From positions 28,520,001 through 28,584,000 of the forward strand of contig NC_083288.1 in the NCBI RefSeq assembly GCF_963506605.1: a stretch of DNA of 64,000 nt. The letters run 5' to 3'. Positions 7,778 to 57,601 of this stretch are shown here, piece after piece; position 1 is the stretch's first letter; every line of letters starts with the position of its first letter. The position numbers and the translations under genes were made by a program. The notes below the pieces were generated by a model, which was given only the letters and a program-made list of their open reading frames with translations, was not told where the DNA came from and made no database searches. This DNA comes from Zootoca vivipara. Lineage: Eukaryota.

Positions 7778-7813
<36 letters not shown>

Positions 7814-10494: not shown

Positions 10495-10496
<2 letters not shown>

Positions 10497-10529
<33 letters not shown>
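10497..10529. repeat. (GT)n microsatellite
   Basis: Direct observation. Confidence 0.95.
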
Positions 10530-10532
<3 letters not shown>

Positions 10533-31198: not shown

Positions 31199-32146
31199 AT
31201 GGAGAATTTTGACAGAGTCAATAGAACAGAAATAACCACTTTTACCCTTCTGGGATTTGGAAATGACCCCAAATTACAAATTCCATTCTTCATGGTATTC
31301 ATAATCATCTACACTATGACTGTGGTTGGAAACATCATAATCGTCACTCTGGTAGTCTCTGATCATCACCTTCATACTCCTATGTACTACTTCCTTGGAA
31401 ACCTGTCCTGCTTGGAGACCTGCTACACTTCAACTGTCCTCCCCAGGATGTTAGCCAGCTTCCTGACAGGGGATAGAACTATATCTGTTGGTGGCTGCTT
31501 TGCACAGTTTTTTTGGTTTGGAACCTTGGCAATTGCTGAATGCTATCTGTTGGCTGCCATGTCCTACGATCGCTATTTAGCCATATGTAAGCCCCTCCAC
31601 TATGCCACTCTTATGGATGGGAAACTCTGCTTTCTCTTGTCGGCTGGGTCCTGGCTCTGTGGGATTACAGTTATGACAATAGTAGTAAGTTTAATGTCAC
31701 AACTATATTACTGTGGTCCCAGTGAAATTGATCATTTCTTTTGTGAATTGGCACCTGTGATTAATCTCTCTTGCAGTGATACCACTACGGTGGCACTGGT
31801 GGGTCTCATAGTCTCAGTCATAGATGCTATTCCTTCTTGTCTCCTAACGCTGATGTCTTATGTGTGTATAATTGCCACCATCTTACGGATCCCATCTTCA
31901 ACAGGGAGGAAAAAGGCCTTTTCAACCTGTTCTTCCCACCTTATTGTGGTTTCTATATTTTATGGATCATTAATATTTGTATATGTGCTTCCAAAAAAGG
32001 AAGCTCTGCGGGAAGTGGACAAAATCTTTTCAGTCTTCTACACAGTCTTAACCCCTCTAATCAATCCCCTTATCTACAGCCTCAGGAACAAAGAGGTGAA
32101 AGAAGCTTTAAGGAGGGTCATAAGCAAATGCAGGGTTTTAACATAA
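31199..32146 (+). CDS. Olfactory receptor (OR11A-like paralog A), 315 aa
   Basis: LHTPMYYFL, MSYDRYLAICKPLHY, KAFSTCSSHL, NPLIYSLRNKEVK. Confidence 0.95.
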   Translation: MENFDRVNRTEITTFTLLGFGNDPKLQIPFFMVFIIIYTMTVVGNIIIVTLVVSDHHLHTPMYYFLGNLSCLETCYTSTVLPRMLASFLTGDRTISVGGCFAQFFWFGTLAIAECYLLAAMSYDRYLAICKPLHYATLMDGKLCFLLSAGSWLCGITVMTIVVSLMSQLYYCGPSEIDHFFCELAPVINLSCSDTTTVALVGLIVSVIDAIPSCLLTLMSYVCIIATILRIPSSTGRKKAFSTCSSHLIVVSIFYGSLIFVYVLPKKEALREVDKIFSVFYTVLTPLINPLIYSLRNKEVKEALRRVISKCRVLT

Positions 32147-35101: not shown

Positions 35102-36188
35102 TTTTAGAGTAAATTTTATTCCGTTTTCCAAATTTAACAAATTAAAAAAAACAATCTTTTATACAAAGCATCTTATATTTTCATCTTTTACCTTGCTCCG
35201 CCGAGCTATGACTTCCCCCCCTCCCTTCATACGGGTTTCTTATTAATTCTCTTTTTTGCAGTTCCTTTTTGACTTATTGGTCAATTCGTAGGATTTATTT
35301 CAATCCTGCAAGAGTTTTTAACGATCTACAGTTTTTCTCCATATAGTCCACATATTTACTCCAGTCCTTTTGAAACCTTGTCTCCCCCTGGTCACGGATC
35401 TTGCAAGTCAATCTAGCAAGTTCAGCATAGTCCATCATTTTTGTCTGCCACTCCTGTAGTTTCCTGTAGTTTCCATTTTTGGGCTAGCAAAGTCCTAGCC
35501 GCGGTTGTTGCATACATAAACAGTATTTGATCTTCTTTTCTAATCTCTCCTCCCATTATTCCTAACAAAAATGCTTCCGGTTTTTTTGGGAAAGTATATC
35601 TAAACATCTTTTTCAATTCATTATATAACATTTCCCAAAATCTTTTGACTTTTTCGCATGTCCACCACATATGATAAAATTCACCATCTCTCTCCTTACA
35701 TTTCCAGCATACTTTATCACTCATTCTATACATTTTAGCTAATTTAACTGGGGTTAAATACCATCTATACATCATCTTATATACATTTTCTTTTAAGGTA
35801 GTACATGCTGTAAATCTTAAGGTTTGATTCCATAGTTTCAACCACGCGTCATATTCAATATTATGCCCACAGTCCTTTGCCCCTTTAATCATCACCTCTT
35901 TTGTTAACTCATCTTTTGTATACCACTCTAGCAACAGATCATACATTTTTGCCAAAAGCTTTGTTTTGCCTTCTAGCACTTCTGTTTGGAATTTGGATCT
36001 TTTGTCCTCAAAACCTATTTTTCTATCCTCTCTAAGCACGTCATTTATTTGATGATATTCTATCCATCCTGTTAATACTCCTTTGATTTCATCAAAAGGT
36101 TTTAAACTCCATCCTTTTTCAGTTTTTGTCAAGATTTCCTTGTATGTGGCCCGCCTCCTCTCCATGTTTACTTTCTTAACTGTTAATA
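35102..36188 (-). mobile_element. L1/Tx1-type LINE, 5'-truncated
   Basis: ORF2 C-terminus KMMYRWYLTP...CWKC...HMWWTC; poly-T on + strand; TSD TATCCTGTATTTTT (35088 / 36189). Confidence 0.9.
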
Positions 36189-37929
36189 TATCCTGTATTT
36201 TTGTTGGAAGCTGCCCAGGGTGGCTGGGATAACCCAGTCAGAGAGGTGGGGTATAGGAAATAAATAATTATATCATCATCACCACCACCACCATATGCAG
36301 GTTCTGTTAACCCCAACTTGCACAATCTGATTTATTACCAGCTTGCTCCTGCCCCCTACCTAAGCTGCCTTTCTTAACTGTCTTAACTCTGTTAGATCTC
36401 TTAAAAACCATAGAATCCAAGCCGGCCACAGTGCTATCCAATCAATGTTCCATCCCACCACTTGGCACCATATATCCATCAACTTATGATGGTTCAAACT
36501 AAGTTTAGCCATCTAAGCACATAAAGATCTGAAGATTCCTATCTCATTGCCATGCTTTCACAGCACCCATCAGCACAGTCATAATTAGAGTAGCATCATC
36601 TGTTTATGAAGGTAATGTGCACTTTCCCCACAGAAGAGCAATTTAAGCATAGTCCTTGGAAAACTCAAGAGGTTTTTCTTCATGCTAATCCCTTGTGCCC
36701 TTCATCACCTTTAAACCCTCTTCATGCAAAACATGTTAGCATGAGTTGCAGTCATGTTGAAGTGGCAAGACAACCTTAACGTGGCCACCACTGCTGAGGA
36801 AATAAATGACCAAGCTATTTTTCCTGATGGTAAAGAGGTAAGGTAAAATTTTATTATTTTTCTCAGAGCTTATCACTGTTATTGAGAGGGAGGATGTCAT
36901 TCAGGAGGAAAAACCCTTGTAAACAGCCCTTCCCCTGTAGTTATGACTGTTACCTTTACAGCAAGAGTGGGCAGACTCCAGGCTTTTAAGATCTATGTTT
37001 ATTCTTAATAGAAGCCCTGAATTTACCAAGCACAGCTAGCTGTAAATGCCATACAGACAGAATGGAGGAACAAGTCAAGGCTGTTTTCAGAACCAGAAAT
37101 GAAATGAGTTTACAGTCCATTAATACAATAGTCAAGGTTATCTACCTCTGAGCAGGTGAGTTTAATGCTGATGTTATTACTAAACAATTGGGAATCAGAA
37201 ACCATTAGCTTCACCTCACTCCTGCTTTGCAATGCAGGAGCATATGACAATGAAGTTCTTCCATTTTGTGGAAAGTATATGTGAATGAAGCCTCAGTGAG
37301 TAATAATTTTTGATATAGATTCAAGCTAAGTTAGATGAACTTTGGTCCCAATATAATAAATGGGACATGATAGTCCTGACTGAAATCTTCCCTTTATTTC
37401 AAAGGGAGTTTAATGCAGCTAAGATACTCTGTATCCAGTCCTGTGACTAAGTAGCTCAATGAGAACTGTTCCTTGCATTGTAGTGAATGAAGCATAGGAA
37501 TCATTAGAGCTCATATGTTTAATAGTCCTACTCAACTGTAGCCAGAGAATCAGACCCACAACTTGTTGCACAATATTATTCATTTATTGTTTATCTGCAA
37601 ACTGTAAGGTTTGTTATTTATTTAGTATATACTGTATAGCCAACCATCAATAAATATTCTCTGATCTAGTAGGGAATACTGAAAATGAGTTGCTGAAAGT
37701 GAAACAATAAGTTTCACAACTGAGTTGCAATCTTCAGCTGATTCTCCAATCCAACCTATATCCATGATTCATGATTCATAAAGATGCATCACTCCATTAA
37801 GACTATGGGAGAAATGCTTCCAATTTTTATTTGAAGTGATTTTTTAAAAAATAATAGCAATTCATGAATTTGGAACATTACACCTAAAGACACTATAATT
37901 TTGGCAATTTAATTTCAGTGACCATAGCT

Positions 37930-38874
37930 ATGGAGAATTTTTACAAAGCCAATGGGACATCAATAACCACATTTACCCTTCTGGGATTTGGAAATGACCC
38001 CAAATTACAAATTCCATTCTTCATGATGTTCGTAATCATCTACACTATGACATTGGTTGGAAACATCATAATCATCACTCTGGTAATCTCTGACCATCAC
38101 CTTCATACTCCTATGTACTACTTCCTTGGAAACCTGTCCTGCTTGGAGACCTGCTACACTTCAACTGTCCTCCCCAGGATGTTAACTAGCTTCCTGACAG
38201 GGGATAGAACTATATCTGTTGGTGGCTGCTTTGCACAGTTTTTTTGGTTTGGAACCTTGGCAATTGCTGAATGCTATCTGTTGGCTGACATGTCCTATGA
38301 CCGCTATTTAGCCATATGTAAGCCCCTCCACTATGCCACTCTTATGAATGGGGAACTCTGCTTTCTCTTGTCGGCTGGGTCCTGGCTCTGTGGGATTACA
38401 GTTATGACAATAGTAGTAAGTTTAATGTCACAACTATATTACTGTGGTCCCAGTGAAATTGATCATTTCCTATGTGAAGTGACACCGGTGATAATTCTTT
38501 CTTGCAGTGACACCACTTTGGTGACACTGGTGGTTCATATACTGTCAATCATAAATGTTTGTTCTTTTTTCCTGACAATGTCATCTTATGTGTGTATAAT
38601 TGCCACCATCTTACAGATTCCATCTTCAACAGGAAAGAAAAAGGCCTTTTCTACCTGTTCTTCCCACCTTATTGTGGTTTCTATATTTTATGGATCATTA
38701 ATGTTTGTATATGTGCTTCCAAAAAAGGACACATTGTGGGAAGTGGACAAAATCTTTTCAGTCTTCTACTCAGTCTTAACCCCTCTAATCAATCCCCTTA
38801 TCTACAGCCTGAGGAACAAAGAGGTGAAAGAAGCCTTAAGGAGAGCCATTAAAAAGTGCAAGGTTTTAGAATAA
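37930..38874 (+). CDS. Olfactory receptor (OR11A-like paralog B), 314 aa
   Basis: All OR motifs present; likely ATG at 37930 after acceptor TTTCAG (AG at 37917-37918); atypical LLADMSYDRY and TM5 lacking Pro. Confidence 0.9.
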   Translation: MENFYKANGTSITTFTLLGFGNDPKLQIPFFMMFVIIYTMTLVGNIIIITLVISDHHLHTPMYYFLGNLSCLETCYTSTVLPRMLTSFLTGDRTISVGGCFAQFFWFGTLAIAECYLLADMSYDRYLAICKPLHYATLMNGELCFLLSAGSWLCGITVMTIVVSLMSQLYYCGPSEIDHFLCEVTPVIILSCSDTTLVTLVVHILSIINVCSFFLTMSSYVCIIATILQIPSSTGKKKAFSTCSSHLIVVSIFYGSLMFVYVLPKKDTLWEVDKIFSVFYSVLTPLINPLIYSLRNKEVKEALRRAIKKCKVLE

Positions 38875-39042
38875 TTTGCAGAGGCCTTGTCCACACACCA
38901 GCATTAGCCAAAGTATGCCTTACCATGACATTGTGGATTTGTAGGCTCCCAGGGAGAAGTTCACATATTCTCTGTTCCTTCTGAGTATTTTAACCACAAC
39001 ACAGCATGGCAGTTACACTAATGTTTGTCTTAGTGGTTTATC

Positions 39043-39132
39043 CATAGCTGCCAAGTTTTCGCTTTTCTCGCGAGGAAGCCTATTCAGCATAAGGGAAAAT
39101 CCCTGTAAAAAAGGGTTAACTTGGCAGCTATG
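39043..39132. mobile_element. 90-bp hAT MITE
   Basis: TIR CATAGCTGCCAAGTT; 8-bp TSD GGTTTATC. Confidence 0.9.
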
Positions 39133-39432: not shown

Positions 39433-41269
39433 AGAGAGTTTGGAAAGAAGTTAAAAGAGATTTGGATAGGTGGAACAAATTGCATTTATCATTGTGGGGA
39501 AGGGTTCCAGTTATTAAAATGAATACATTACCAATAATGCTTTATCTATTCCAAACTATACCGGTGATAATAAAAGAGGATTGTTTCGATATCTGGAGGA
39601 AAGACATAACTAAATTTATATGGCAGGGGAAAAAACCTCGTATAAAATTTAAATTGTTGACACAAAAGAAGGAAAAGGGGGGGCTCTCACTACCAAATTT
39701 ACGATTATATTACGAGGCAGAATGCTTAATATGGATGAGGGATTGGATGAAATTAGAAAATACAAAAATTTTGGACCTTGAGAGCTTTAACTCTAGCTAT
39801 GGTTGGCACGCATACTTGAATTATGGAAAAGCTAAAACAAATAAAGAATTTACCAACCATATATTAAGAGGGGCACTATACAAGGTATGGGTCAAATATA
39901 AAAGGTATATTGAATTGAAAACGCCGCTATGGATCTCTCCCATAGAGGCTTATGCACGCAAAAAATTAACTACTGAGATAAAATGGCCTGTATATAAACA
40001 ATTAATAGTAGAGCACCATGAGGGGTATAAATTAAAGCCATATGAAGAATTAAAATGTTATGGTATCAGTAATTGGCAATATATACAGTTGGTCAATATA
40101 TTTAGAGCAGACAAAAAGATAGGTTTTGCAAAAGAAGATTCACTATTTGAAAGAGAAATCATTCAAAATAAAAGTAATGTGTTATCCAGAGCATATAATT
40201 TACTACTGGGGTGGGACTTATTTCAAGAAGAAACGACAGAATCTATGATTAAATGGTCCCAGGATCTCGGTCAGACAATACAAATTGACCAATGGGAGAA
40301 ATTGTGGAAGCAAGACATAAGATTTACGGCTTCTTATAACATAAAAGAAAATTTTATCAAAATGTATTTTAGGTGGTATTTAACACCTGTAAAGATGGCC
40401 AAAGTATATAAATTGAAAAATAATTTATGTTGGAGATGTAATCGGGAACCTGGCACATTTATACATATGTGGTGGACGTGTCAAGAAATAAAAAAGTTTT
40501 GGTTAATGATTCATGAAGAATTAAAGAAAATGATGAAAAAATCGATAAAGAAAAAACCAGAGATTTATCTATTAGGTTTATTAAGTGAAGAGATCCCCCA
40601 AAAGAACAAGACAGTGTTCTTGTATGCGTGCACAGCAGCCAGGGTTCTAATAGCTTCTTATTGGAAGACATCCAAAATACCAACGAAAGAAGAGTGGATA
40701 AACAAGCTTAGTGAGTATTTATTAATGGCCAAGCTAACAGTAGCCTTGAGAAATCAACCGAAACAAAAATTAAGAAGCGAATGGGAAAGTTATGATGAAT
40801 ATATAAAAAAATATTTTTTAAAAGTGGGCATGCTCACATGCTTAGAATAAAAAGATATGAGGGGTTATAAAAACAAAGAGTGGAGATACAAGATAAGAGT
40901 GATAGAGGAATACAGGAAAGACAGAATGCATGCAGAGAAAATACATAAGTGATGGATTATACTTAGAAATGGAAGCAGAAGTGAAAATAGAAGTCGGGTA
41001 AATAAAGGAGGGAAGCTTGTGGGGGTGGGTTGGTGTTGGGGGTGATTGGTATTTGGTGAAATTTTGTATATATATTTATTTTTATTTATTATTTATTATT
41101 ATTATTATTATTATTTGTCTATCTGTTTGTTTGTTTGCTTTTTTCGTTATTATTATTATTTATGGATATTACGGATTATTCTTTATGTTTATTGGTTTAC
41201 AGATTATTTGTTTATTGTTTATGTTGAGTTGTATAAAGATTGATGCTCAATAAAAAATTAAAAAAAAAA
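39433..41269 (+). mobile_element. L1/Tx1-type LINE, 5'-truncated, young (462-aa open ORF2 C-terminus)
   Basis: LSLWGR..IKMN.LP..LYLFQ, GGLSLPN, CWRC...HMWWTC zinc knuckle; AATAAA and poly-A; TSD AGTAAACAGAATG (39420 / 41270). Confidence 0.93.
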
Positions 41270-43995: not shown

Positions 43996-45354
43996 ACTTG
44001 TCAGAGGTGGCCTCAGCGGTGCAGCACCATCTACTGAGTCCACCATGCATGAATCCCATTCATAAAACCATACATTCATTCACATCTTCCTGCATATCCT
44101 TGACAGCCCACAGGCAAAACATTCAAATCCTGTTTCCCTTCTTATCAGTCCGCTCCAGGTGTCATGCAGATCACTCTGCAAACAAGAAAACATATCAGTA
44201 AATGTGTCACAAACAAGTTTGCAAAAGCTTCTTACTGACACCACCCAGGAAAAAGAATGTAAATCACCCACAAGTACTGTCCTTAACACAGATGTTTTTT
44301 CCCAAATGTCACTCACCTGCAAATCTGTTCATGCCGTGCCTAGTGTGGCGTCTTCTGTAATCCATGTGCTTGCATTTTCCTGTATGAAACCAAGTGAATG
44401 AATATCAGGGCTTGCCCTTTGTTCGGGGTTCCTTTTCATGAAGCAAGGAACCCTGTTGCAACAGTCATTTCTTTGTTTGCAATAAAGATCAGGATTACAA
44501 GCCGCTTTGCTTCAAATTTCCCCGGTTTGGTCTCTGTTCTTTACTCCTGACCGTTAAGAGCCTAAAAAGTGCCTTTTCGGTAGTTGCAATTCCCTTAACG
44601 AAGGCGACAATTTATGGGCAAATTTCTTTAACACCCTCATCTGCCTCTGAGCCATGACATCCCTAAAACCCCTGATGTAAATCTAAACTGTCTTCCTCTT
44701 CCCCCTCCCTGAAATGGTCAAGCTGGGGAGGAGGTCTCCACCATTTCTCCTCTGCCCACTCCCTGACAGGTATTATGGAATACACTTCCTGCTGATATAT
44801 TAACATTCAGATGGCCCATTGATACAATATCCAGATTTAAAAAAGAAATTGTAGAGGACAATGCCAAATTATTGAAGAAAATGTACAGCTTACTGCTAGA
44901 ATGGTAAACAAAGGGTGAAGAGGTTCAAAGTGTGGTGATAAAGTGGACAAAAGATCTGGGACATAATATTCAAATGAGTGATTGGGGAAAACTTTGGAAG
45001 GTGGATCTGAAATTCACTGCATGTACAACACTGAAAGAGAACTATATGAAATTGATGTTCCGTTGGTACATAACACCGGTAAAGCTTGCTAAAATGTATA
45101 GAACAAGTCCTAATAAGTGTTGGAAAGTCAAAGAAAAAGAGGGTGGTGGGAATATAAAATGGTTAAAAGTTACTGGGAAATGATATATAATGAATTTAAG
45201 AAAATGTTTAAATCAACGTTTATTTAAAAACCAGAAGTGTTCTTATTAGGAATAATAGGAAGCCAAATCCCGAAGGACAAGAAGAAATTGTTTATGTACG
45301 CAACAACAACAGCCCGGATTCTATTAGCTCAAAGTGGAAGAAAGACATGATACC

Positions 45355-45701
45355 CATACCTGCCAAGTTGCTGTCAGAGAAATAAGGGACTGGGCCGGAA
45401 ATAGCAGACCAGAAGTAGCACTGCCGCCGTTTTGAAACTGGCCGGAGCATGCTCAGAAGTGACTTTTGATGCTGCTTTGCCCAGTTCCAAAATGGCCGCT
45501 ACGCCAGAAGTCGCACTGCAGCCATTTTGGAACTGGGCAGAGCAGCATAAAAAGTCGCTTCTGAGCATGCTCTGCCCAGTTCCAAAATGGCCGCCACGCC
45601 AGAATAAACTGGGGAAAAACAAAAAAACAACCGTTTTTCTAGCTAGGAACAGCTGGGGAAACGGGGATTTCCTGGGGAAAACGGGAGACTTGTCAGCTAT
45701 G
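45355..45701. mobile_element. 347-bp hAT MITE nested in L1
   Basis: CATACCTGCCAAGTT...ACTTGTCAGCTATG; 8-bp TSD ATGATACC. Confidence 0.9.
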
Positions 45702-46121
45702 ATGATACCAGCAATAGAAGAATGGAACTGAAATTGATGGACTATGCTGAAATGCTAAACTCACAGAAAAGCTTAGAGACAATGAGAAATTTCAAAAAGA
45801 ATGGGAAACATTTATGGGTATGTCTTAAAATATGAGAAACAGGGTATGTACAAAAATAGTGTAAATAAGTAGAAACATTGGAAGGCTTTCATTAAACATT
45901 TGCAAGAAGTTAAAATGAGATACAGTTAAATAAAGGAAATTTGAATTGAGATATTAAGGTTTGATGGTAAATGTTGATTAAAGTTAAACGTTAATGAAAA
46001 GAAGAATAGGAGTTTAATTATAATTATTCAGAAAATGTATACAGTCAATGAACCAGAATATTAAATGGAGGGAAGTCAGGAGGTTAAAGAGAACCTCCAA
46101 AAAGGAAAAAGGAAAAAGATG

Positions 46122-46124
<3 letters not shown>

Positions 46125-46171
<47 letters not shown>
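46125..46171. repeat. (TA)n microsatellite (others at 50788-50836 and 57609-57654)
   Basis: Direct observation. Confidence 0.95.
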
Positions 46172-46174
<3 letters not shown>

Positions 46175-46776
46175 AAGGGTTGATGTCTTATGTTTATTTT
46201 TATTTATTTTTGTTGATGTTTCTGGTTTTTGGGTTTGTTTTCTTTTTTAAAAAGAGTAATTGTTGAAGTTAAAATTGTAAAATCAATAAAAAATTATTTA
46301 CAGGAAAACACACATACAAAAGGAGTGTGTTATTATGCTTCCAGTCACTTCAAACTGCACAGTATTGATATCTACAATACATTCTTAATTAAAGTAGCAC
46401 CATAATTTTACAAATGGATTATGCCTCCTTTTCCCAGAAGAGCAATTTAAGTGCAGCTCTTCTTGGAAAACTCAAGAGGTTGTTCTTCATAATGATCCCT
46501 TGTGACCATTTCCAACCTCTTATATAATCTCTCTTCTTGGAAAACATGTTAGCATGAGATGCTGTCGTGTGAAGTGGTTGGACAAGTTGTGATTATTACA
46601 GCTAAGGAAATGAATCACTAAACTGTTCTGCCTTGGTTCCATGGTCAAGAGGAATGGTAACATTATTATTATTCTCCTCACACCCAATTATTTATTTTCA
46701 CTAGATGTCTGCCAATTTTAAAATCTCACATTCTTTACAGATCATTGCTGGAAAAGAAAATGTCATAAAGAGAAAG

Positions 46777-46810
<34 letters not shown>

Positions 46811-46882
46811 TGTGTGTATGTGCGTGCGAGCTCCAATTGTCTTTCCTCTGCAATGCAAAAGCCCAGCACGTTAAGTTCATTA

Positions 46883-47117
46883 CCGTGTTTCTCATATTAT
46901 AAGACATGTCTTATATTTATTTTTTCCTCAAAAAAACACACTATGGCTTATTTTCAAGGGATGTCTTATTTTTTTCCTTCTCCTCCTGCCGCGGCCGGCA
47001 TTGCTGCTGCACCTATCACTATGTCTTATTTTCGGGGTATGTCTTATATTCCTTGAATGCTTAAAAATCCTGCTATGGCTTATTTTATGGGTATGTCTTA
47101 AAATATGAGAAACAGGG
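46883..47117. mobile_element. Tc1/mariner-type MITE
   Basis: TIR CCGTGTTTCTCATATTATAAGACA / TGTCTTAAAATATGAGAAACAGGG; TA on both sides. Confidence 0.85.
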
Positions 47118-48433
47118 TATTTGCTAAACATTTACAGTACAGACCTATACATGCATACACAGAACTGATGCACACTGATGAATGAAATACAAATGCATTC
47201 AAGAAGCTGCGATTTTCCAGGAATCCATCCCAGAAGGAAGATGAGATTTTTAATATAAAGAAATATTAATATGCTGTTATTTGATGCTTCTTTCATCTGT
47301 TCTTTTTTGACTTACTTATCTAAAACTTCATATCTTCTGAATTATCTTGCTTAGCTTCAAACATCTGCAGGAACTGATATTATTCTGCTTCCTTAGATCC
47401 TACTCTTTGGTGTGTGTCCCTCTTTACAAGCTGTTATTCAATTGAGAGAGAGGGTGCCTGTAAGGAGGAAAGACACTTGTAAACGACCCTTCCTCTGTGG
47501 CAATGTTTAGTCATATTTTGTCCCTACACAAAGCATGGTCAGACTCATAATCTACTTAAAACGAGAACTAAAGAATATACCGACCAGTTAGTTTTAAATG
47601 TGTACAGATAGAATGAAGGAACAAGTCTGTTTTCACTACCAGAAATTAAATGAGTTTGCAGTCCATTCATACAAACGTATACTCCAGAATTTTCTATCTC
47701 TCAGCAGGTGAATTTAATGTTGATGCCAGTGCTAAACAATAGGGAATACAAAGCTATTACCGTCAGCTCACCCCTGCTTTGCAGCGTAGGAGCACATCAC
47801 TGGGAAGGTATTCCATGCTGTGGAAAGTGAATGTGAATGAACCCTTAGGGGTTACCTGTGAGATGCATTCAGGAATTTGGTTCCAATGAAATCAATGAGA
47901 CATGCTAGTTATGACTGAAATCACTCCTTTATTTCCAAGGTAGCTATCATAGCCTGTGTCCAACCTTTTGAGTAAAATGGGCAGTGCACTGAAAACTGTT
48001 CCTTTCATTGTAGTGAATGAAGATGTATTAGAAGCACCGGAGTTCATATTTTGCATTGTCCTGCTTGATTGGAGTCAGAGAACCAGACCCAACACCAACA
48101 GTTTGTTGCACTATATTGTTATTGTTTAAACTGTAAAGGGTTTTTTATGGTATATATAGCTTGCCATCAATAAGCATTCCCTGATCTGAGGAATACTGAT
48201 AATGAGATGCCAAAAGAGACACAAGGAGCTTCACAAGTGAGTTGTAATTTTAAGCTGATCTCCAGTCCAAACTATACCCATGATTCATCATTTATATAGA
48301 TGTATCATTACAGGAAAAAAATAGTTCCAAATTTCATTTAAATGATTGAAAAACCCCTAGCAATCAATGAAATCTGGAATATCAAACCTAAGGAAACTAC
48401 AATTTTGACACTTAACCTCCAGTGAACACACCT

Positions 48434-49375
48434 ATGGAGAATTTTGAAATAAGCAATGGAACAGCAATAACCACATTTATCCTTCTGGGATTTGGGAATG
48501 ACCCCAAATTACAAATTCCATTCTTCATGATGTTCCTAATCATCTACACTGTGACCATGACTGGAAACATCACCATCATTGCACTGGTAATCTCTGATCG
48601 CCACCTTCATACTCCTATGTACTACTTCCTTGGAAACTTGTCCTGCTTGGAGACCTGCTACACCTCAACTCTCCTTCCCAGGATGTTAGCCAGCTTCCTG
48701 ACAGGGGATAGAACTATATCTGTTGGTGGCTGCTTCACTCAGCTTTATTGGTTTGGATTTCTAGTTGTTGCTGAATGTTACCTGTTGGCTGCTATGTCCT
48801 ATGATCGCTATTTAGCCATATGCAAGCCCCTCCACTATGCCACACTTATGGATGGGAAACTCTGCTTTCTCTTGTCGGCTGGGTCCTGGCTATGTGGGAT
48901 TATAGTTATGACAATAGTAATAAGTTTAATGTCTCAACTATATTACTGTGGTCCCAGAGAAATTGATCATTTCTTTTGTGAATTGACACCGGTGATTAAT
49001 CTCTCTTGCAGTGACACCACTTTGGTGACATTGGTGGGTCTTACAGTCTCAGCCATAGACACTATTCCCTCTTGTCTCTTGACACTGATGTCTTACGTGT
49101 GTATAATAGCCACCATCTTACGGATCCCATCCTCAACAGGGAGGAAAAAGGCCTTTTCAACCTGTTCTTCGCACCTTATTGTGGTTTCTATATTTTATGG
49201 TTCCTTGATATTTGTATATGCGCTTCCAAAAAGGAAAGCTCTGCAGGAAGTGGACAAAATGTTCTCAGTCTTCTACACAGTCTTAACCCCTCTAATCAAT
49301 CCCCTTATCTACAGCCTGAGGAACAAAGAGGTGAAGGAATCTTTGCGGAGGGTCATAAGCAAATGCAGAGTTTGA
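48434..49375 (+). CDS. Olfactory receptor (OR11A-like paralog C), 313 aa
   Basis: All OR motifs present; ATG at 48434 after acceptor CTCCAG (AG at 48421-48422). Confidence 0.95.
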   Translation: MENFEISNGTAITTFILLGFGNDPKLQIPFFMMFLIIYTVTMTGNITIIALVISDRHLHTPMYYFLGNLSCLETCYTSTLLPRMLASFLTGDRTISVGGCFTQLYWFGFLVVAECYLLAAMSYDRYLAICKPLHYATLMDGKLCFLLSAGSWLCGIIVMTIVISLMSQLYYCGPREIDHFFCELTPVINLSCSDTTLVTLVGLTVSAIDTIPSCLLTLMSYVCIIATILRIPSSTGRKKAFSTCSSHLIVVSIFYGSLIFVYALPKRKALQEVDKMFSVFYTVLTPLINPLIYSLRNKEVKESLRRVISKCRV

Positions 49376-50499
49376 AAATAATTTGCAGAAGTTTTGTCCA
49401 CACATCCATTTAAGTCAAAATATTATTTACCATGACCTTGTGAATATGCAGGTTTCCAGGTTGAAGTTCACATCTTCTCTGTTCCTTCTGAGTATTTTAA
49501 CGACAGCAAAGCATGACAGTTGTGCTAAGGTTTGTCTTAGTGTTTCATCTATGCTAGGGATCCCGGTTAAAGTTACTAATTATAGCTTATTGGCTATACA
49601 CCATGGTTAAGGAGAGACCTTAACTACAGTTCCCAGTTTGGATGATAAACTGAAGCACAATCCTTAGCTTAAGTGCCATGCCACACTGTTGTTAAATAGC
49701 AAGTATGAATTCCTCTCTGGGAGCCAGCTTGGGCTTGGGCTTCTCTGCATGCCATGGCTGCTGCCAGCCCAAGCCAGGAAAAGAGGTGCATGGGAATCGG
49801 CAGTGGTGGCCCCACACACCTGTGCACCTCTTTTTCCTGCTCTGGCTGGCAGCAGCATGGGCTGTCCTCTTTTTTGCTCTTCAATATATGGCTAACCTAC
49901 ATAACAAGAATCCCATGTTTTTCATTAAATGCATGCTTAGGTGATTGCTGTTGCTGTAGCAGCAGCTGCTTAAGGGGGCTTTTTTATTGATGGAGTGACA
50001 TACTGATATTTGCTGGTCCTTTATTTCTGTGACGACTGGGATGGCATCAAACAGATTAAATAGGAACATCCAATATTTGCTGGACATACAAAATCCCTGC
50101 AATTGACATATTTCAGATCATGTGGTCATGTAAGAAAATTCAGTTATAACAAATGTATATGTTGGGTTGTGATCTTCCCAATGACTCAGTAGTGATATCT
50201 TTTCAATATTTTAAGGATAGAGTCCGGAGGGATATTATTGGAAATTGTTAACTGCAGAAAGAATGATTGAATGCCAAAATCTCAATAGCCTGTTGGTTGA
50301 CTAATATATATGGTTAATCTATTGAATTTAATCAGAACCAGAGATGGACAACAATGTGAAGACAAATATGTGGAGAAATGGAGTGGAGAAAGAATAAAAA
50401 GCAGGATTGGGTGAATCCGCATTTGGCATATAATAAAGTATATAAAATAGAAAGGATGGAGGCAATCTTATGGCAAGATCCACTGGGATGAGTGAGTTA

Positions 50500-50782
50500 T
50501 TTTTTATTTATTTTTAAATATATTTATTGGTTTTTTTTCTGACAAACATAAAACCGACATACCAAAATAGCAAAAGGAAAAAAAATTATTAGAAAAAATA
50601 CAGAAAAACAAAACAGTAAAAAATAAACTATCATTATATGAACTCATTTCATAACTCAACTTCGACTTCCCCGTCCCTCTTTCCGAGCCTTTATAATATC
50701 CCAGTTTACACAGCTTTCAAATTATGACCATATTACACACACTCATTATACTTTAATATTCATTTATACTAATCACATATAC

Positions 50783-50840
<58 letters not shown>

Positions 50841-52598
50841 TTCAAATAACTTTAATCAAATTTCACTTCCAATATACACCTCTTTCAGATTAAAACCATA
50901 TTCTAATATATCATTATGCCTATCTTTCATATTTTACCAACCCTCTACTATCTCCCCTTAGCCTATTATTTTTCTTTAAAAATACTCTATCTTACTCAAT
51001 CTAAAACCTATTTCTAACCCATTACCCCACTCTATCCCCTGGTTAGCAATTCCCGGATTGACAGTCCTTCATACAATCCAATTTCAGACCATGTAATCCG
51101 TCCCATTCAAAATGCCTCTTCGCTTTCAACCCACACCATCTCTAATCCACTTCAACCCACCCTCCTCTCCCCACCCCTTCTTCTGTTGTTCCAATTTCTT
51201 AGCCCCCTCCCACCTCCATCTTTTCCCTTTCTTATCCTCCCATGTGTCTTGGCTTTTGCCTGGTGTTCACCTCCCTCCTCTCACTAGAGAGGTTCGGACC
51301 TAGGACATGTCTTGATTCTTTGCTACTGCTTGATTGATTTTACCAGGAACCTGGTCCCTCTTTCTCACTGAGGGATCAGCATCCTGGATTTTTTCTTCTT
51401 TTAGAACATTCTGGTTGCAGTCAATACTTTGTGCAACTTCTCTCACAGGTTGCACTATTTCCACATTTTGTCGCTCTTCTTGTCCATCCTCTATTAGAAC
51501 TTTAATATTTTTAAATTCCAAAACCGCTGCATGTGGCTCCTGATTGTCTTTGAGAATAAGTTGTTGTAGTGTTTCAGTGAAGATCTGTGTGTTTCTTCTG
51601 TATTTCTGCAATTCTCCCAACACTTCTTGAGTTGTTCCAAAATACATTGTAACCAGTTCTTTTCCATCTTGTGATTTGATGTTTTGACTGGCCACGTTCC
51701 TTTATCTTCTCATATTACAATATGGAGCTTGGCCTGCTGTGCCAGAGACAGTGCCTTTTCCTTTTTGTCCACCAAAATCCCATCAAACTGTAATCTAATG
51801 TAGTTCCACTGTCCCAATTTTAAAATCCAATCTTTCTTTCCAATTTCACAATCATAGAAATTCAAGTCCAGCTAAAATTCACCCAATTAAATCTTTATTA
51901 TTATTATTTTTTCAAGTTCAAAAGTTCACTTAATAGGAAGCTTCCTCGACTGGTGACGTCACAATGGCGGCTAATCAGTTTCCAGTTTTCTACCCCCAGG
52001 GTACCAAAGGGCTTGTTAATACACCTTATAAGCTTTTGCGGATTTCAACAGACAATAAATTCTCATTCGCTTGGTTCCGCTGCCACAGGAAAGGGTTACA
52101 GCTTAATTTTAAAAGAAAATCAGAGTCCCGTTCCAGCTCTATGGCTGCAGGCTCAGTAGCTGCGTTGTGATTTTCTCGTGGGGGGGGGGACAACCTCCGT
52201 TTCCTCTTTAAATTCCACTCCCAAGGCCAAATTCTTTTAAAGTCTGAATCCTAAAAGTGATTACTCACATGTCCATTTTATATGTATTGGAGGTATCCGT
52301 CACTCATTTAGTCGCCAGCACAGAGCTTTGTGCCTCAGAGGTAGCGAATTGATCCATGGCTCCGTCCCGCTCTTTCTGCTCACGGCACTCCAAAAAAAAG
52401 AGCTTGTCGGGTAGTGAGCGGGGCTTTAGGGAGCTCAGCTGGGTGCCCATGTCCCCGGAAAGCTCAATCCGGGGGTTCTTCAGGAGGCTGCGGTGCTCAT
52501 GCAGCCTTCCCACCCCCACCCACCACCTCCCGTGGTGCTGGGGAAATCGGAGACCGAGAAATACCCCGCCGATTGACAATGGCGATAGACCGGAAGTT
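50500..52598 (-). mobile_element. 2.1-kb non-autonomous L1-derived (HAL1-like) retroelement
   Basis: 16-bp TSD TGGGATGAGTGAGTTA (50484 / 52599); 5' end AACTTCCGG plus GC-rich leader; A-rich tail; no RT or endonuclease motifs seen. Confidence 0.7.
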
Positions 52599-52794
52599 TG
52601 GGATGAGTGAGTTAGCATGTGGTGGATGTCTAAGTCAGACAGTTGATTCCCAACTCAGCTGGGCTGAGACCAGTATAATTCCCACCAAAAGGGGCATTCT
52701 GGGGGCATGGTGGTGACAGAGCTGGGCAATAGCATGACGTAGAAAGATGGGAAATGCAAATCAGGTTATTTTTAAAAGGCTTGTTTTCCTTCTG

Positions 52795-53004
52795 GTTACA
52801 GGTAGGTAGCCGTGTTGGTCTGGGTCGAAGTAAAATAAAAAAATTCCTTCAGTAGCACCTTAAAGACCAACTAAGTTTTTATTTTGGTATGAGCTTTCGT
52901 GTGCATGCACACTTTTTCAGATACAGTGAAATAGAAGTCCCCAGGCACTTATGTAGAGAAGGGGTGGGGATGGGGATGGGGAGGGGAGGGGGGATCACTC
53001 AGAA
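52795..53004 (-). mobile_element. Penelope terminal fragment with hammerhead motif (core G8->A)
   Basis: Nearly identical to the termini of the 23307 element; 12-bp TSD GTTTTCCTTCTG; empty paralogous site at 55027-55038. Confidence 0.88.
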
Positions 53005-53591
53005 GTTTTCCTTCTGACAGACTTGGGTTGGCAGCTGCCTTGCTGCTGAATAGAGTATCGCTCTGGCATAACTTTACACTGGGTTATCTTATGCTGGCTT
53101 GCTTTACACCAGCTTCTTGTGTAGAAGCTTGCTCTCACAGAGGATATGAGTACTTTATTATCTGTTGTTTATAATTTTATTGTAAAATGGCATATATAGT
53201 TAATGCAGTGTACAATTCAATAGGCAGAGGATGTAACAGAAGGCTTTGTAGCAGGTGTTTTTTTATATCAAAAAAGTGTTGATGTCTTATGTTTATTTTT
53301 ATATATTTTTGTTGTTGTTTCCTTTTTTGCTTTTGTTTTCTGTTTTACAAAGAAGAACTGTTGAAGTTAAAATTGTAAAATCAATAAAAAATTATTTACA
53401 GGGGGAAAAACACTGTTTTCTGTTTTACAAAAATAATTGTTGAAGTTAAAACTGTAAAATCAATAAAAATAATTTACAGGAAAACACACACACAAAAGGA
53501 GTGCGTTATTATTCTTCCTGTCACTTCAAACTGCACAGTATTGATATCTACAATACATTCTTAATTAAAGTAGCACCATCATTTTACAAAG

Positions 53592-53721
53592 GGATTATGC
53601 CTCCTTTTCCCAGAAGAGCAATTTAAGTGCAGCTCTTCTTGGAAAACTCAAGAGGTTGTTCTTGAGTTTTCCAAGAAGAGCTGCACTTAAATTGCTCTTC
53701 TGGGAAAAGGAGGCATAATCC
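53592..53721. repeat. Perfect 62-bp inverted repeat with 6-nt loop (fold-back)
   Basis: 53592-53653 is the exact reverse complement of 53660-53721; loop GGTTGT. Confidence 0.97.
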
Positions 53722-54494
53722 TCTATCTTGTCATCAATTTTAGGCACTTAGCAACATCGGTTTTCATCAAAATTGGGGAATAACCTAGATGTTTAGAAAT
53801 GACAGAAAAATTTAAAAAATGTTAAAAAGGAGGAACTTTTCACATAGAGATTTACCAAGCAAGACCTCAAGATTTACAAGGAACCAAAATAGATTTCAAA
53901 TTACCTCATGATACCACAACTTTTTAACACCCCTCAAATCAGGATTTTTAAAGATGGAAAAAATCAACACACCCTAATTTACCATGACGTTGTGAATATG
54001 CAGGTTTCCAGGTTGAAGTTCACATCTTCTCTGTTCCTTCTGAGTATTTTAACGGCAGCAAAGCATGACAGTTGTGCTAAGGTTTGTCTTAGTGTTTCAA
54101 CTATGCTAGGGATCCCGGTTAAAGTTACTAATCATAGCCTATTGGCTATACATCATGGTTAAGGAGAGACCTTAACTACAGTTCCCAGTTTGGATGATAA
54201 ACTGAAACACAATCCTTAGCTTAACTGCCATGCCACACTGTTGTTAAATAGTAGGTATGAATTCCTCTCTGGGAGCCAGCTTGGGCTTGGGTACGGGCTT
54301 CTCTGCACGCCATGGCTGCTGCCAGCCCAAGGCAGGAAAAGAGGTGCATGGGCATGGCAGTGACGGCCCACACACCTGCACACCTCTTTTCTCTGCTCCA
54401 GCTGGCAGCAGCATGGGCTGTCCTCTTTTTTGCTCTTCAATATATGGCAAACCTACCTAACAAGAATCCCATGTTTTTCATTCAATGCATGGTA

Positions 54495-54734
54495 GAGGTG
54501 GTACCTCTACTTACGAATAACTCTACTTACGAATGTTTCTACTTATGAACAGAGCTCCGTCCGCCATCTTGGATGCGGTTTAGATTTTTTTCTACTTACG
54601 AATTTTTAGGTAGGATTGCTTCGACTTACGAATTTTTCCCCCAATGCATTCCTATGGGATTCGACTTACATTTTTTCCCCGACTTACGAATGTGCGTTCG
54701 GAACGCATTAAATTCTTAAGTAGAGGTACCACTG
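54495..54734. mobile_element. Tc1/mariner(pogo)-type MITE, same family as 16574
   Basis: GTGGTACCTCTACTTACG...TAAGTAGAGGTACCACTG-TA. Confidence 0.85.
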
Positions 54735-56214
54735 TATGACAAACCTACCTAACAAGAATTCCATGTTTTTCATTAAAGGCATGCTAAGGTGATTGCTGAT
54801 GCTGTAGCAGCAGCTGCTTAAGGGGGCTTTTTTATTGATGGAGTGACATACTGATATTTGCTGGTCCTTTATTTCTGTGACGACTGGGATGGCATCAAAC
54901 AGATTAAATAGGATCAGTGTAATTCCCAACTAAAGGGGCATTCTGGGGGCATGGTGGTGACAGAGCTGGGCAATAGCATGACGTAGAAAGATGGGTAATG
55001 CAAATCATGTTATTTTAAAACGGCTTGTTTTCCTTCTGACAGGTGTGGGTTGGCAGCTGCCTTGCTCCTGAACAGAGTATGGTTCTGACGTAACTTTACA
55101 CTGGGTTAACTTATGCTGGCTTGCTTTCTACCAGCTTCTTGTGTAGAAGATTGCTCTCACAGAGGATATGAGTACTTTATTATCTGTTGTTTATCATTTT
55201 AGTGTAAAATGGCATGTATAGTCAATGTAGTGTAGAATTCAATAGGCAGTGGATGTAACAGAAGGCATTGTAGCAGGAATTTTATCATGTGATTTGTATT
55301 GTTACATTAGGAGTATATTATGCATATCATGTAGGAATCTGACATGCCTGTTCCATATTCTCTTTTACTACAGTCATTCACTATGTACTTTGCCTTCTTC
55401 CTAAAATTATGCTGTCTCTGAGCTTTCTTCTTTTTATTTTTCCCACCACTGAGGACCATGTCTTACAAAATATCCTTGTTCCTTTTTTTCGCATCCCCCC
55501 CATTCTGTCCAATCTATCCATGTATTGTTATTCCTTGCTTTTGTCTTATCAACTTATACTATTTGTGATACTTTCATGAAAAGGAAATTATTTTCTTTTC
55601 CAAGTTGTAATGAAATCTAAAAAGATTGTTATGGCAGTAAAATAAATTTTAAAAAACCTATTGTTCTGTTTTGTAATTATTATTTTATAAACTGATTTTA
55701 TTTTTTCCTAAGGAAGGACTAGCAGGGTCCAAAATGCTTATTAAACCATTTGCTGTCCACCCCACTGCTTTTGCGCCCAGTTCCTCTTATTTGGGGGTGG
55801 GGTCACATTTTTGTGCAACATTGTCTCCTAAAAGGCAGGTTGACTGTAATTTTTCTTATTCCAATGGTAGATAACAATTCAGTGACACTGATATGAAATG
55901 AGAAGCTTCTATGTTCATGCAACAGATTAAGCAAAAACCTTTTCTTCACATTGGTTAAACTTCAGCTGGATCAGAAGGAAATAATGAAGTTAGCTGAATA
56001 CCATTTGAGATGGCCAGAAATATTTATTCACTCACTCACTCACTCACTCACTCAATGTACAGGGGTGGTGCCAAGAAGTTTTCTCTGATGGAGGAATGTC
56101 TTTTATTCTTAAGAAGGTGTTTTGTCAGAAGTGCTTTACTCTGCCAAACAATTCATTGGATCTAACCCAGACATTATCATATATCACTTCATAATCAGAA
56201 ATTCTTTTTTCATT

Positions 56215-57195
56215 CTACCCAAAGCTGCTGTGGAAAGGTGTCCTTCTCCTTACAAAACTAAACAACTGACAGATAAGCTTACTCATAGCTTCCTTTATCT
56301 CTCTGTTTCTCAGGCAATATACAATGGGATTGACAATGGGGGTTAGAACTGTATAAAAGATGGAGAAGGCTTTGTTCAGGTGTTTCATTGTGTTTGTTTT
56401 CGGAAACATGTAGACCATGACAAGGGTTCCATAGAAAACTGTAACCACCATAAGATGGGATGAACAAGTGGAAAAGGCCTTTTGTCTCCCTGTGTTTGAT
56501 GGAATTCTTAGGATAGTGGAGATTATCAAACCATAGGACACCAAAATCAAAAGAAATGGGGCTAGAGCTATTAGGGAAGAGAGGAAGAAAGCCATTAATT
56601 CCATCTGTTGGGTATCACCACAGGCAAGCTTTATAACTGGGGTGAAATCACAAAAGAAATGATCAAGAATACGAGGACCACAAAATGATAGCTGAGACAT
56701 CAAATAGGTTGTTATAGTGTTAAGTAGAAAACAGCTTGCACATGATCCCATCATAAACTGTATGCACAATGTATGATTCATTAAGGCTGAATAGTGAAGA
56801 GGCTTGCAAATTGCTAAATACCGGTCGTAAGACATAGCAGCCAACAGATAACATTCTGAACCCACAAGAGAGCCAAAGAAATAATATTGTAAAAAACAGC
56901 CCCACATGGGAATTGTCCTCTCTCCAGTCAAGAAACTTGCTAGCATCCTGGGTACTATGGTTGAGCTGTAGAAGGTCTCCAGGCATGAAAGGTTTCCCAG
57001 AAAGAAGTACATGGGGGTATGGAGATGCTGGTCACACACGATAAGAACAACAATCAGAAGGTTTCCAGACATGGTCACAGTGTAGATCAGAAGAAACAAT
57101 AAAAAGAAAATTAACTGCAGTTCAGGAACATCACTGAATCCCAAGAGAATGAATTCTGCAAAGTCTGTTTTGTTCCTCCAGTTGTGGGTTTCCAT
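56215..57195 (-). CDS. Olfactory receptor (OR11A/OR6-like), ~326 aa from METHNW
   Basis: OR motifs; N-glycosylation site NKT; polypyrimidine tract and AG acceptor just upstream (57205-57204). Confidence 0.93.
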   Translation of the reverse strand: METHNWRNKTDFAEFILLGFSDVPELQLIFFLLFLLIYTVTMSGNLLIVVLIVCDQHLHTPMYFFLGNLSCLETFYSSTIVPRMLASFLTGERTIPMWGCFLQYYFFGSLVGSECYLLAAMSYDRYLAICKPLHYSALMNHTLCIQFMMGSCASCFLLNTITTYLMSQLSFCGPRILDHFFCDFTPVIKLACGDTQQMELMAFFLSSLIALAPFLLILVSYGLIISTILRIPSNTGRQKAFSTCSSHLMVVTVFYGTLVMVYMFPKTNTMKHLNKAFSIFYTVLTPIVNPIVYCLRNREIKEAMSKLICQLFSFVRRRTPFHSSFG

Positions 57196-57601
57196 TGCAT
57201 TTACTATGCATGAATAACAGAAACAGAAGTACACTTGTGAAGATAACCATATACACAGTTCTTAAAAAAATGAATCTGTTCATGGATCTTTTAATAGTTC
57301 AAAGATGGATGAAATCTGTAAGAAACATTGCAAATTAAGAGGTTAGAGGAAATAATTCCACAGGTGTTGCAAAACTGTCTCTTGAATACAGCAGTGACCC
57401 ACCAAAATGTTCTATTTGACATGGGTCTGTAACTTTGCCTCTACCTTCTTAGGGGAATGAGGTATGAAGCAGAAGATGGGCTATGTCTGCAACCTAATGT
57501 CAGCCAGACATTGCAGAGTTCAAGAGGGAGAATGTCTTCTCAAAGACAGGATATACATCCATAAAATAAACATTATCATTATCTGTCTCATATAAAGGTT
57601 A

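Follow-up and report, generated by a model that had tools for sequence, protein, structure and literature searches.

A tandem duplicate of an olfactory receptor (OR) unit in Zootoca vivipara lacks the coding sequence (CDS) found in the neighbouring intact copy and carries a template-switch junction in its place, the hairpin at this junction being taken from the assembly. We put the probability of this core reading at about 0.85, and the fuller statement, in which the CDS was deleted after the duplication, has somewhat better than even odds. All positions refer to the window, the 64,000-nt stretch of DNA that was analyzed, and features lie on its plus strand unless noted. A run of N is present in the window at 6210–6390.

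By sequence comparison, the intact unit (copy 1) occupies 46174–53261, with its left edge inside or beside a (TA)n microsatellite (46123–46174). It contains the intact CDS of OR paralog C (48434–49375), an open reading frame of 313 amino acids plus stop codon that matches Pfam 7tm_4 (E 4e-57) over model positions 1–278 of 280. As the sequence-only reading had proposed, this unit is duplicated directly downstream: across a T/A-rich junction (53262–53272), the same comparison places a second copy, the "ghost", at 53273–55283, in which the OR unit is represented by its flanks and the CDS is absent. Five segments of the two copies are collinear, namely 46174–46487 with 53273–53663, 49425–49935 with 53977–54491, 49887–50068 with 54735–54916, 52668–52803 with 54912–55044, and 53014–53261 with 55036–55283. 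Checked for the low identity that would undermine a duplication, these segments instead agree at 94.5% (67 mismatches in 1208 aligned nt, or 5.5% divergence). Beyond copy 2, a further OR lies on the minus strand at 56215–57234.

The absence from the copy of about 2.94 kb including the whole CDS was also borne out. The copy-1 segment at 46488–49424 (2,937 nt), which starts 1,947 nt before the ATG and ends 49 nt beyond the stop codon, has no counterpart in copy 2: blastn of this segment against copy 2 yielded no match longer than 23 nt, and tblastn of the OR-C protein against 53200–56200 yielded chance matches only (E ≥ 0.32). The ghost contains no recognizable OR coding sequence, intact or disrupted, and is thus neither an OR gene nor an OR pseudogene (7tm_4). 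Paralogs A (29071–32152) and B (36575–39045) are collinear with C over the segment missing from copy 2, and the CDS-containing structure is therefore ancestral. The earlier description of a coding exon that had been "removed" is accurate in that the copy lacks the CDS and the intact form is ancestral, but removal presupposes that the copy once had one.

Other differences between the copies are smaller or of a different kind. Most of the remaining 2.6 kb absent from copy 2 is a retroposed insertion in copy 1 only (50500–52599, minus strand), which has an A-rich tail on that strand and is flanked by an exact 15-nt target duplication (GGGATGAGTGAGTTA; 50485–50499 and 52600–52614); a Pfam search of this 2.1-kb insertion gave no significant match. 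Copy 1 alone also has a SINE-like insertion (52795–53005) between 11-nt target duplications (TTTTCCTTCTG; 52784–52794 and 53006–53016). Copy 2 in turn has a specific tandem duplication at 53334–53487, whose two units (53334–53413 and 53414–53487; 4/74 mismatches plus 3 indels) correspond to a single unit in copy 1 (46236–46311), as well as a second template-switch-like scar at 54445–54783, where 47-nt direct duplicates (54445–54491 and 54737–54783) enclose a MITE (54498–54736). This MITE has GTAGAG in place of the 5′ terminus TACA, a normal 3′ end with a normal adjoining TA, and a depth in short-read contigs of approximately 5e5.

The left junction of the missing segment has the geometry of a fold-back. 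At the break, copy 1 reads ...CTCAAGA GGTTGT TCTT followed by CATAAT, and copy 2 reads ...CTCAAGA GGTTGT TCTT followed by GAGTTTTCC..., the final base common to both being 53663 (46487 in copy 1). The native arm of the hairpin (53592–53653) is identical to 46416–46477 of copy 1 and is followed by the native loop GGTTGT (53654–53659), by the native TCTT (53660–53663), which is complementary to AAGA at 53650–53653, and by 58 nt of new DNA (53664–53721) forming an exact reverse complement of 53592–53649, the junction's own flank. The junction letters and the 58-nt templated inversion given in the sequence-only reading were thus confirmed to the base. The two arms (53592–53653 and 53660–53721) are 100% complementary over 62 nt, both equal 46416–46477 of copy 1, and the hairpin has a predicted DNA fold of −78.9 kcal/mol (z = −23). 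A short inverted repeat was already available at the priming site, since the intact copy has AAGA (46474–46477), a 6-nt loop, and TCTT (46484–46487), directly after which the break lies. A perfect 62-nt inverted repeat together with approximately 1.2 kb of 94–95% collinear identity cannot be ascribed to chance. A hairpin-less alternative structure would run from ...GGTTGTTCTT straight into the filler described below.

Between the inversion and the point at which the right flank restarts (53977–54491, equal to 49425–49935 of copy 1 in the 3′ flank of the OR CDS) lies a filler of 255 nt (53722–53976). The earlier description of this segment as A-rich filler was right in length, position, and composition (41% A), but the filler is not anonymous DNA. 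Its depth in short-read contigs is 370–2000, compared with approximately 15–40 for unique sequence (some 20–100 times unique depth), and other genomic copies run on past both of its ends (their loose ends lie before 53724 and beyond 53961), which identifies it as a piece from the interior of an interspersed repeat present in high copy number. This repeat origin is the new point of the present analysis, and it means that the event involved no fewer than three junctions and drew on an ectopic template. A sensitive blastn search for its source in the window (word 7, E up to 1) found chance matches of at most 39 nt, its six-frame translation contains no open reading frame, and an Rfam search of 45000–57500 returned no match. 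Within the filler, contigs of runs X1 and X3 at unique-like depth match the window letters over 53759–53806, where the common repeat variant in run X5 differs, a further sign that the duplicate is real. Letters private to this filler are G at 53759, 53788, 53796, 53830, 53871, 53892, and 53910, A at 53806, and TC at 53722–53723.

The structure may be explained as follows. A unit of approximately 4.8 kb with OR paralog C, which measures about 7.1 kb today owing to later insertions, would have been duplicated in tandem with breakpoints at the (TA)n microsatellite and an A/T-rich site, and the distal copy would then have lost 2.94 kb in a single break-repair or replication-restart event with three junctions. 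At the first junction, the 3′ end ...AAGAGGTTGTTCTT would have bent back on itself or moved to the complementary strand, where TCTT paired with AAGA and 58 nt were copied to give the perfect 62-nt palindrome; at the second, the end would have come away and restarted synthesis on one copy of an abundant interspersed repeat at another site, from which about 255 nt were copied; and at the third, the locus would have been regained at the equivalent of 49425. Microhomology is 4 nt at the first junction and at most 1–2 nt at the other two, the latter figure being measured against repeat variants in the reads rather than the donor copy itself. Such a process would be microhomology-primed template switching, either of the SD-MMEJ/Pol-theta "snap-back" or of the MMBIR/FoSTeS type, and its product would be an inert relic of one birth-and-death cycle of the OR family.

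Both types of process have well-described counterparts. The snap-back model of SD-MMEJ needs a pre-existing inverted repeat at the break (PMC2943611, PMC5728401, PMC4912351), and its signature is a reverse-complement insert from the adjacent flank (PMC5068794). The present junction resembles this system (PMC2943611, PMC5728401, PMC4912351, PMC5068794) in that AAGA-N6-TCTT would prime on its own flank and in its reverse-complement insert, accompanying deletion, and repeated priming and dissociation. However, Pol theta inserts are error-prone and usually 3–30 nt long (mostly below about 30 nt in PMC5068794), whereas here 58 nt without a single error are followed by 255 nt of an ectopic repeat. 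On account of these tract lengths, MMBIR-type switching fits at least equally well and an MMBIR-like processive polymerase is favoured; of the earlier proposal of a snap-back on a 4-bp AAGA/TCTT microhomology, by template switching or Pol theta-type repair, the exact left-junction geometry stands, and the tracts are long for Pol theta. The enzyme itself cannot be inferred from sequence. Templated insertions of the MMBIR type have sources within 100 bp (PMC8421209), and in MMBIR/FoSTeS and short-range germline switches (PMC8421209, PMC7954356), which occur as fixed germline variants, synthesis primed by microhomology likewise moves to an inverted template no more than 100 bp away, switches again, and finally comes back to the locus; unlike those cases, the present one is coupled to a 2.9-kb loss and the capture of a distant repeat fragment. 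It also differs in its kilobase scale from megabase-scale fold-back inverted duplications (PMC3907307).

The most serious alternative to deletion after duplication is that the distal copy had never held an OR gene, a single replicative repair event of an MMBIR or chromoanasynthesis-like kind having produced it without a CDS through serial switches; we regard this as possible but clearly the less probable course. The path would lead back about 4.8 kb to (TA)n, through an 80-nt back-slip, the fold-back, and the ectopic repeat, and would rejoin the locus at 49425 before a 47-nt back-slip that took up an ectopic MITE. Three to four template-switch-type scars lie within 2 kb of copy 2, whereas the corresponding parts of copy 1 contain nothing but clean transposable element (TE) insertions with target duplications, and the duplication boundary falls at a (TA)n tract, a plausible fork-stalling site. 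Moreover, the 80-nt duplication (5/76, 5/74, 4/74) and the 47-nt duplication (3/47, 5/47, 4/47) are star-like with copy 1, and both are therefore about as old as the unit duplication. Iterative switching is documented (PMC8421209, PMC11293582). On the other hand, simple tandem OR duplication (for example, A, B, and C) followed by later loss is the commoner route, and the canonical TA junction at the right end of the MITE may mean that the element inserted in the ordinary way and the site was repaired locally afterwards.

The hairpin arms show 0/62 differences, compared with 4/74 (plus 3 indels) and 4/47 in the other internal duplications of copy 2 and 5.5% between the copies, and the probability that the arms are as old as those other duplications is approximately 0.02–0.03. 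The fold-back therefore seems younger, although the identity of the arms could instead reflect arm-to-arm homogenization or local constraint; the 62-nt arm sequence is identical in copy 1 as well and is the best-conserved part of the upstream block of A, B, and C. Taken with these dates, we lean weakly toward a loss of the CDS later than the duplication rather than a one-step birth without it. The older-looking template-switch-like scars elsewhere in copy 2 count against a later deletion and fit a one-step origin.

It was also considered whether the filler may be the remnant of a TE that had inserted into copy 2 and was trimmed, together with the OR, by two deletions, one of them with a snap-back, so that no ectopic switch would be needed. 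The filler does belong to a high-copy repeat family, and TE insertions are frequent in the OR unit. However, copy 1 has no such element, a search of the filler termini found neither element ends nor a target duplication, and both ends are internal to the repeat, whose copies go beyond 53724 and 53961–53976; the scenario therefore requires an insertion and two independent deletions that jointly removed exactly the segment between the flanks, which makes it quite improbable.

Even less credence is due to the view that assembly error produced the hairpin, or indeed all of copy 2, through a read that was chimeric or folded back or through false duplication of a haplotype. Long-read artefacts do include perfect palindromes as a known class. 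To assess read support, Logan k-mer contigs (k = 31) were used from X1, X3, and X5, three Zootoca vivipara runs from three studies, and from X12, a run of another species. None of these short-read contigs crosses the hairpin (53621–53720), as is to be expected of a de Bruijn assembly when the arms of an inverted repeat match perfectly and exceed k, and the genome assembly is thus the only witness to the hairpin. The surrounding junctions, by contrast, speak against an artefact: the tandem junction is bridged in X1 (record 1), X3 (record 17), and X5 (record 25), the distal end (55283/55284) in X1 (record 8) and X3 (record 24), and the junction of filler and right flank by X5 record 29 (53941–54443, 1 difference). 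With the tandem junction and distal end bridged in independent samples, the duplication is no assembly or haplotig artefact, and false haplotype duplication in particular was ruled out by the bridged junctions. In addition, the divergence of 5.5% far exceeds allelic levels, and collinear homology restarts past the insert, unlike in artefactual fold-back reads. With its direct orientation, collinear high-identity flanks, and junction in independent samples, the ghost qualifies as a tandem segmental duplicate, and it appears to be present in every conspecific individual sampled here. Contigs of X12 on the locus are short, non-collinear pieces only, mostly repeats.

The locus offers a clearly readable germline scar of several steps, from fold-back on a 4-nt inverted repeat through copying of an ectopic repeat to return, in a family that is known to gain and lose genes rapidly. 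It resembles OR birth-and-death and deletion alleles (PMC3308321, PMC2570968) in that a tandem OR duplicate would have been lost by deletion and not by point mutation, yet it is apparently found in all individuals sampled and is not a segregating copy-number variant. The survival of the flanks makes the loss directly readable, and some OR losses thus leave flanks only, beyond the reach of CDS-based censuses. The mutational mechanism is already established, as is the loss of ORs by deletion, and no new question is opened by this case; it would gain greater weight only if the retained upstream piece were transcriptionally active.

It is very improbable that the ghost acts as a natural delta-OR allele, with an OR promoter that still works, so that olfactory neurons choose it and are then obliged to choose again. 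As an OR locus without coding sequence, it resembles the engineered delta-M71 allele of the mouse, whose neurons make a second OR choice (PMC4967819). The ghost keeps the 108 nt (the equivalent of 46380–46487) with which the block common to paralogs A, B, and C begins, including a TAATT core and two runs, AGAAGAGCAATTTAAG and CTCAAGAGGTT, that are invariant in all three paralogs. However, engineered delta-OR alleles keep the promoter, transcription start site (TSS), 5′ exons, 3′ UTR, and polyA context, with a reporter added, whereas the ghost lacks all sequence from a point 1.95 kb before the ATG onward, and the position of its promoter or TSS was not located. The shared block is 72–73% conserved, not above the 78–80% of the remaining upstream region, and the break splits its core (46436–46560) mid-way. 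In a local realignment this core is moderately conserved, no better than the proximal upstream region, and conservation was rejected as proof of a promoter. Inspection by eye found no strict O/E site (TCCCNNGGGA), and among the listed runs containing the stretch none is recorded as RNA. The suggestion that the locus is a natural counterpart of chosen delta-OR alleles is accordingly unsupported, the block being represented by no more than its first 108 nt, and the notion that these 108 nt might be an OR promoter core that still fires, making the locus a natural CDS-less "null choice", deserves slightly less credence still. If it did fire, transcription would begin with a perfect 62-bp hairpin that matches sequence upstream of paralog C exactly and could give rise to small RNAs directed against that gene.

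Six intact olfactory receptor (OR) ORFs were found in the window, among them the close plus-strand paralogs A (31199-32146), B (37918-38874) and C (48422-49375, ATG at 48434), which all match Pfam 7tm_4 (E 1e-49 to 1e-57). The unit of paralog C (copy 1, 46174-53261) is followed directly by a second copy (copy 2, 53273-55283). A repeat search and blastn of 53200-55400 against the window, followed by pairwise alignments, yielded five collinear blocks: 46174-46487 of copy 1 corresponds to 53273-53663 of copy 2, 49425-49935 to 53977-54491, 49887-50068 to 54735-54916, 52668-52803 to 54912-55044, and 53014-53261 to 55036-55283. The copies diverge by 5.5% (67 mismatches in 1208 aligned nt; 2.3-10% per block), and the tandem duplicate proposed in the sequence-only reading was thus reproduced to the base, at an identity that is not low. 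The segment 46488-49424, comprising 2,937 nt that begin 1,947 nt before the ATG and end 49 nt beyond the stop codon, has no counterpart in copy 2. Within 53200-56200, tblastn with the OR-C protein gave chance matches only and the deleted DNA no match longer than 23 nt, which bears out the earlier claim that the whole CDS and ~2.94 kb are absent. Since units A (29071-32152), B (36575-39045) and C (46380-49552) are collinear at 72-80% identity across the entire missing stretch, the CDS-containing arrangement is ancestral and copy 2 is derived. LINE ORF2-like C-terminal ORFs lie between the paralogs at 35422-36165 (minus strand, 247 aa) and 39462-40850 (plus strand, 462 aa), the latter directly after unit B, where homology between units B and C stops.

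Otherwise the copies differ in size through ordinary insertions into copy 1. One, retroposed and 2.1 kb long (50500-52599), has its A-rich tail on the minus strand and is bordered by an exact target duplication of 15 nt, GGGATGAGTGAGTTA (whole 50485-52614); the other is SINE-like, measures 211 nt (52795-53005) and is flanked by a target duplication of 11 nt. This puts the unit at ~4.8 kb when it was duplicated. The larger insertion holds a 131-aa minus-strand ORF (51300-51695) for which a Pfam search gave no significant match; the insertion may be either a LINE-dependent retrocopy or non-autonomous. Two long (TA)n microsatellites are present, at 50785-50840 and at 46123-46174; the tandem duplication has its left breakpoint at the latter. 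Close to the OR-C unit on its upstream side, 45409-45604 holds two tandem 95-nt units (80% identity) that also form an imperfect palindrome (45423-45499/45518-45594, 88% complementary) and are probably part of a repeat element.

At the left junction of the missing segment, both copies read ...GGAAAACTCAAGA-GGTTGT-TCTT, which continues as CATAATGATCC in copy 1 and as GAGTTTTCCAAGAAG... in copy 2 (53663/53664). The letters here agree with the proposed 58-nt templated inversion and AAGA/TCTT microhomology: two hairpin arms (53592-53653 and 53660-53721) are complementary over 62 nt at 100%, and both are identical to 46416-46477 of copy 1. The right arm opens with four native bases, TCTT, which leaves 58 nt (53664-53721) as new sequence. 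The folding energy of the hairpin strand is -78.9 kcal/mol (z = -23). Beyond the hairpin lies a filler of 255 nt (53722-53976, 41% A), after which homology to copy 1 returns at 53977 (= 49425). Length and A-richness are as first described; the filler itself can now be assigned to an interspersed repeat. Contig depth is 370-690 over 53783-53869 and 1300-2000 over 53870-53956, compared with ~15-40 in unique flanks, and other genomic copies extend past both ends, before 53724 as ...GGTACCACTG and behind 53961 as TTCAACACGCCCTATTCCCAC..., still parallel to the window until ~53976. The filler has no source within the window, no ORF and no Rfam match, and its ends show no element terminus, target duplication or tail. 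On the basis of depth and of the copies continuing beyond both ends, it is an internal fragment of a high-copy repeat, and the event therefore involved three junctions and an ectopic template.

Judged from its letters, the geometry of the left junction is exactly that of snap-back or strand-switch synthesis. The four terminal bases of a 3' end ...AAGAGGTTGTTCTT would anneal to AAGA, six bases upstream, and extension would add 58 nt; a nascent strand switching to the complementary template would give the same product. The short inverted repeat needed for priming is already present in intact copy 1, as in the SD-MMEJ model (PMC2943611, PMC5728401) and in 'templated extension in cis' by Pol theta (PMC4912351). 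In C. elegans, however, Pol theta inserts are mostly short (>20 nt being noted as long) and error-prone, and snap-back is a minority class among them (PMC5068794), whereas here 58 error-free nt are followed by 255 nt from another locus. MMBIR-type switching uses microhomology averaging ~3.7 bp and templates often within 100 bp, proceeds through more switches before the original template is regained, and occurs as germline variants (PMC8421209; also PMC7954356, PMC3907307); it suits these tracts at least as well. Microhomology at the two filler junctions is at most 1-2 nt, as measured against repeat variants in reads and not the actual donor. Of the earlier mechanism, the fold-back on a 4-bp microhomology agrees with this geometry, and the tract lengths favour a processive, MMBIR-like polymerase.

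That the coding exon was removed from an existing copy, as originally proposed, is the reading we lean towards, at roughly 55%: duplication of the unit, then deletion of the CDS. It is possible, though distinctly less probable, that copy 2 arose in a single multi-switch replicative event and never contained the CDS. Further scars of the same flavour speak for such an origin, namely a tandem duplication (53334-53413 and 53414-53487) and a direct duplication of 47 nt (54445-54491 and 54737-54783) with a MITE in between; both duplications are star-like with copy 1 (5/76, 5/74 and 4/74; 3/47, 5/47 and 4/47) and thus about as old as the unit duplication. Copy 2 also lacks ~470 nt, the residue of a 2.6-kb gap once the retroposed insertion is discounted. 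The hairpin arms, however, show 0/62 differences against 3.4-4.1 expected at 5.5-6.6% divergence (P ~0.02-0.03), so the fold-back looks younger than the other scars. This argument is weak: copy 1 has the identical 62 nt, conservation within the upstream block common to A, B and C peaks in this stretch, and the arms of a palindrome can undergo mutual homogenisation. The MITE (54498-54736, or 54445-54783 with the flanking duplicates; TIR CAGTGGTACCTCTACTT, TA target, high-copy, read depth ~5e5) has a canonical 3' end (...CACTG-TA), whereas its 5' TACA is replaced by GTAGAG; lying between 47-nt target copies, it looks like repair after aborted excision or a template switch, unlike normal TA insertion. 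For comparison, the copy at 16576-16816 is normal.

In eleven same-species sequencing runs from four studies, between one fifth and two thirds of the sampled words were present. Logan contigs of three of these, X1 (possibly the sample behind the assembly), X3 and X5, each from a different study, and of one run from another species (X12) were mapped to 53000-55600. The tandem junction (53262-53272) is spanned in 3/3 same-species runs (records 1, 17 and 25; 0-2 differences), so the duplication is not an assembly artefact; the distal end (55283/55284) is spanned in X1 (record 8) and X3 (record 24), and the filler/right-flank junction (53976/53977) by X5 record 29 (53941-54443, one difference), which reaches 36 nt into the filler. 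At 53759-53806, contigs of X1 and X3 at unique-like depth (26.5, 48.3) carry the window's own letters, from which an abundant repeat variant in X5 differs. Taken together, these results show that several individuals carry the CDS-less copy. The hairpin is known from the assembly alone: no Logan contig of the four runs crosses 53621-53720, as expected, since every k-mer of one arm recurs in reverse complement in the other arm and in copy 1. The sole contig reaching 53663 (X3 record 19) reads as copy 1 at 53580 and 53591 before it departs from the stretch, and hence represents copy 1. It is nevertheless very improbable that the hairpin is an assembly artefact, given that collinear homology resumes past the insert and nearby junctions are confirmed in the contigs. 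A falsely duplicated haplotype is ruled out by the spanned tandem, distal and filler junctions and the unique-like-depth contigs.

The suggestion that copy 2 may still be chosen by olfactory neurons, by analogy with mouse, in which neurons proceed to a second choice after choosing an M71 allele that lacks its CDS (PMC4967819), found no support and appears highly doubtful. Those alleles retain promoter, TSS and untranslated exons, whereas copy 2 retains only the first 108 nt of the A/B/C block. These include a TAATT core and two runs invariant in the three paralogs, but the break interrupts the conserved core (46436-46560), conservation of the block does not exceed that of the remaining upstream region, no strict O/E site was seen by eye, and none of the listed runs holding the stretch is on record as RNA. 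The block itself (46380-46660, 29071-29350 and 36575-36850; invariant runs TAATT, AGAAGAGCAATTTAAG, CTCAAGAGGTT and ATGTTAG) precedes each of the three CDSs by 1.3-2.1 kb and may be a promoter or a first non-coding exon. Possible splice donors lie near 46655, that of B being GAG/GTAAGG.

Deletion is an established route of OR loss, and copy-number variation of ORs is equally well known (PMC2570968; PMC3308321 reviews their birth and death). Templated fold-back and ectopic insertions likewise form a recognised class of scars where deletions are joined; the locus is a well-preserved new instance of both. What is new here is the identity of the filler as a repeat fragment. Adjoining the OR cluster, the window also holds two near-identical tandem V2R-type genes (4058-19683), with ligand-binding-domain and 7TM exon ORFs at 4058-4900, 8828-9799, 14770-15684 and 18775-19683; an N run (6210-6390) lies inside the first.
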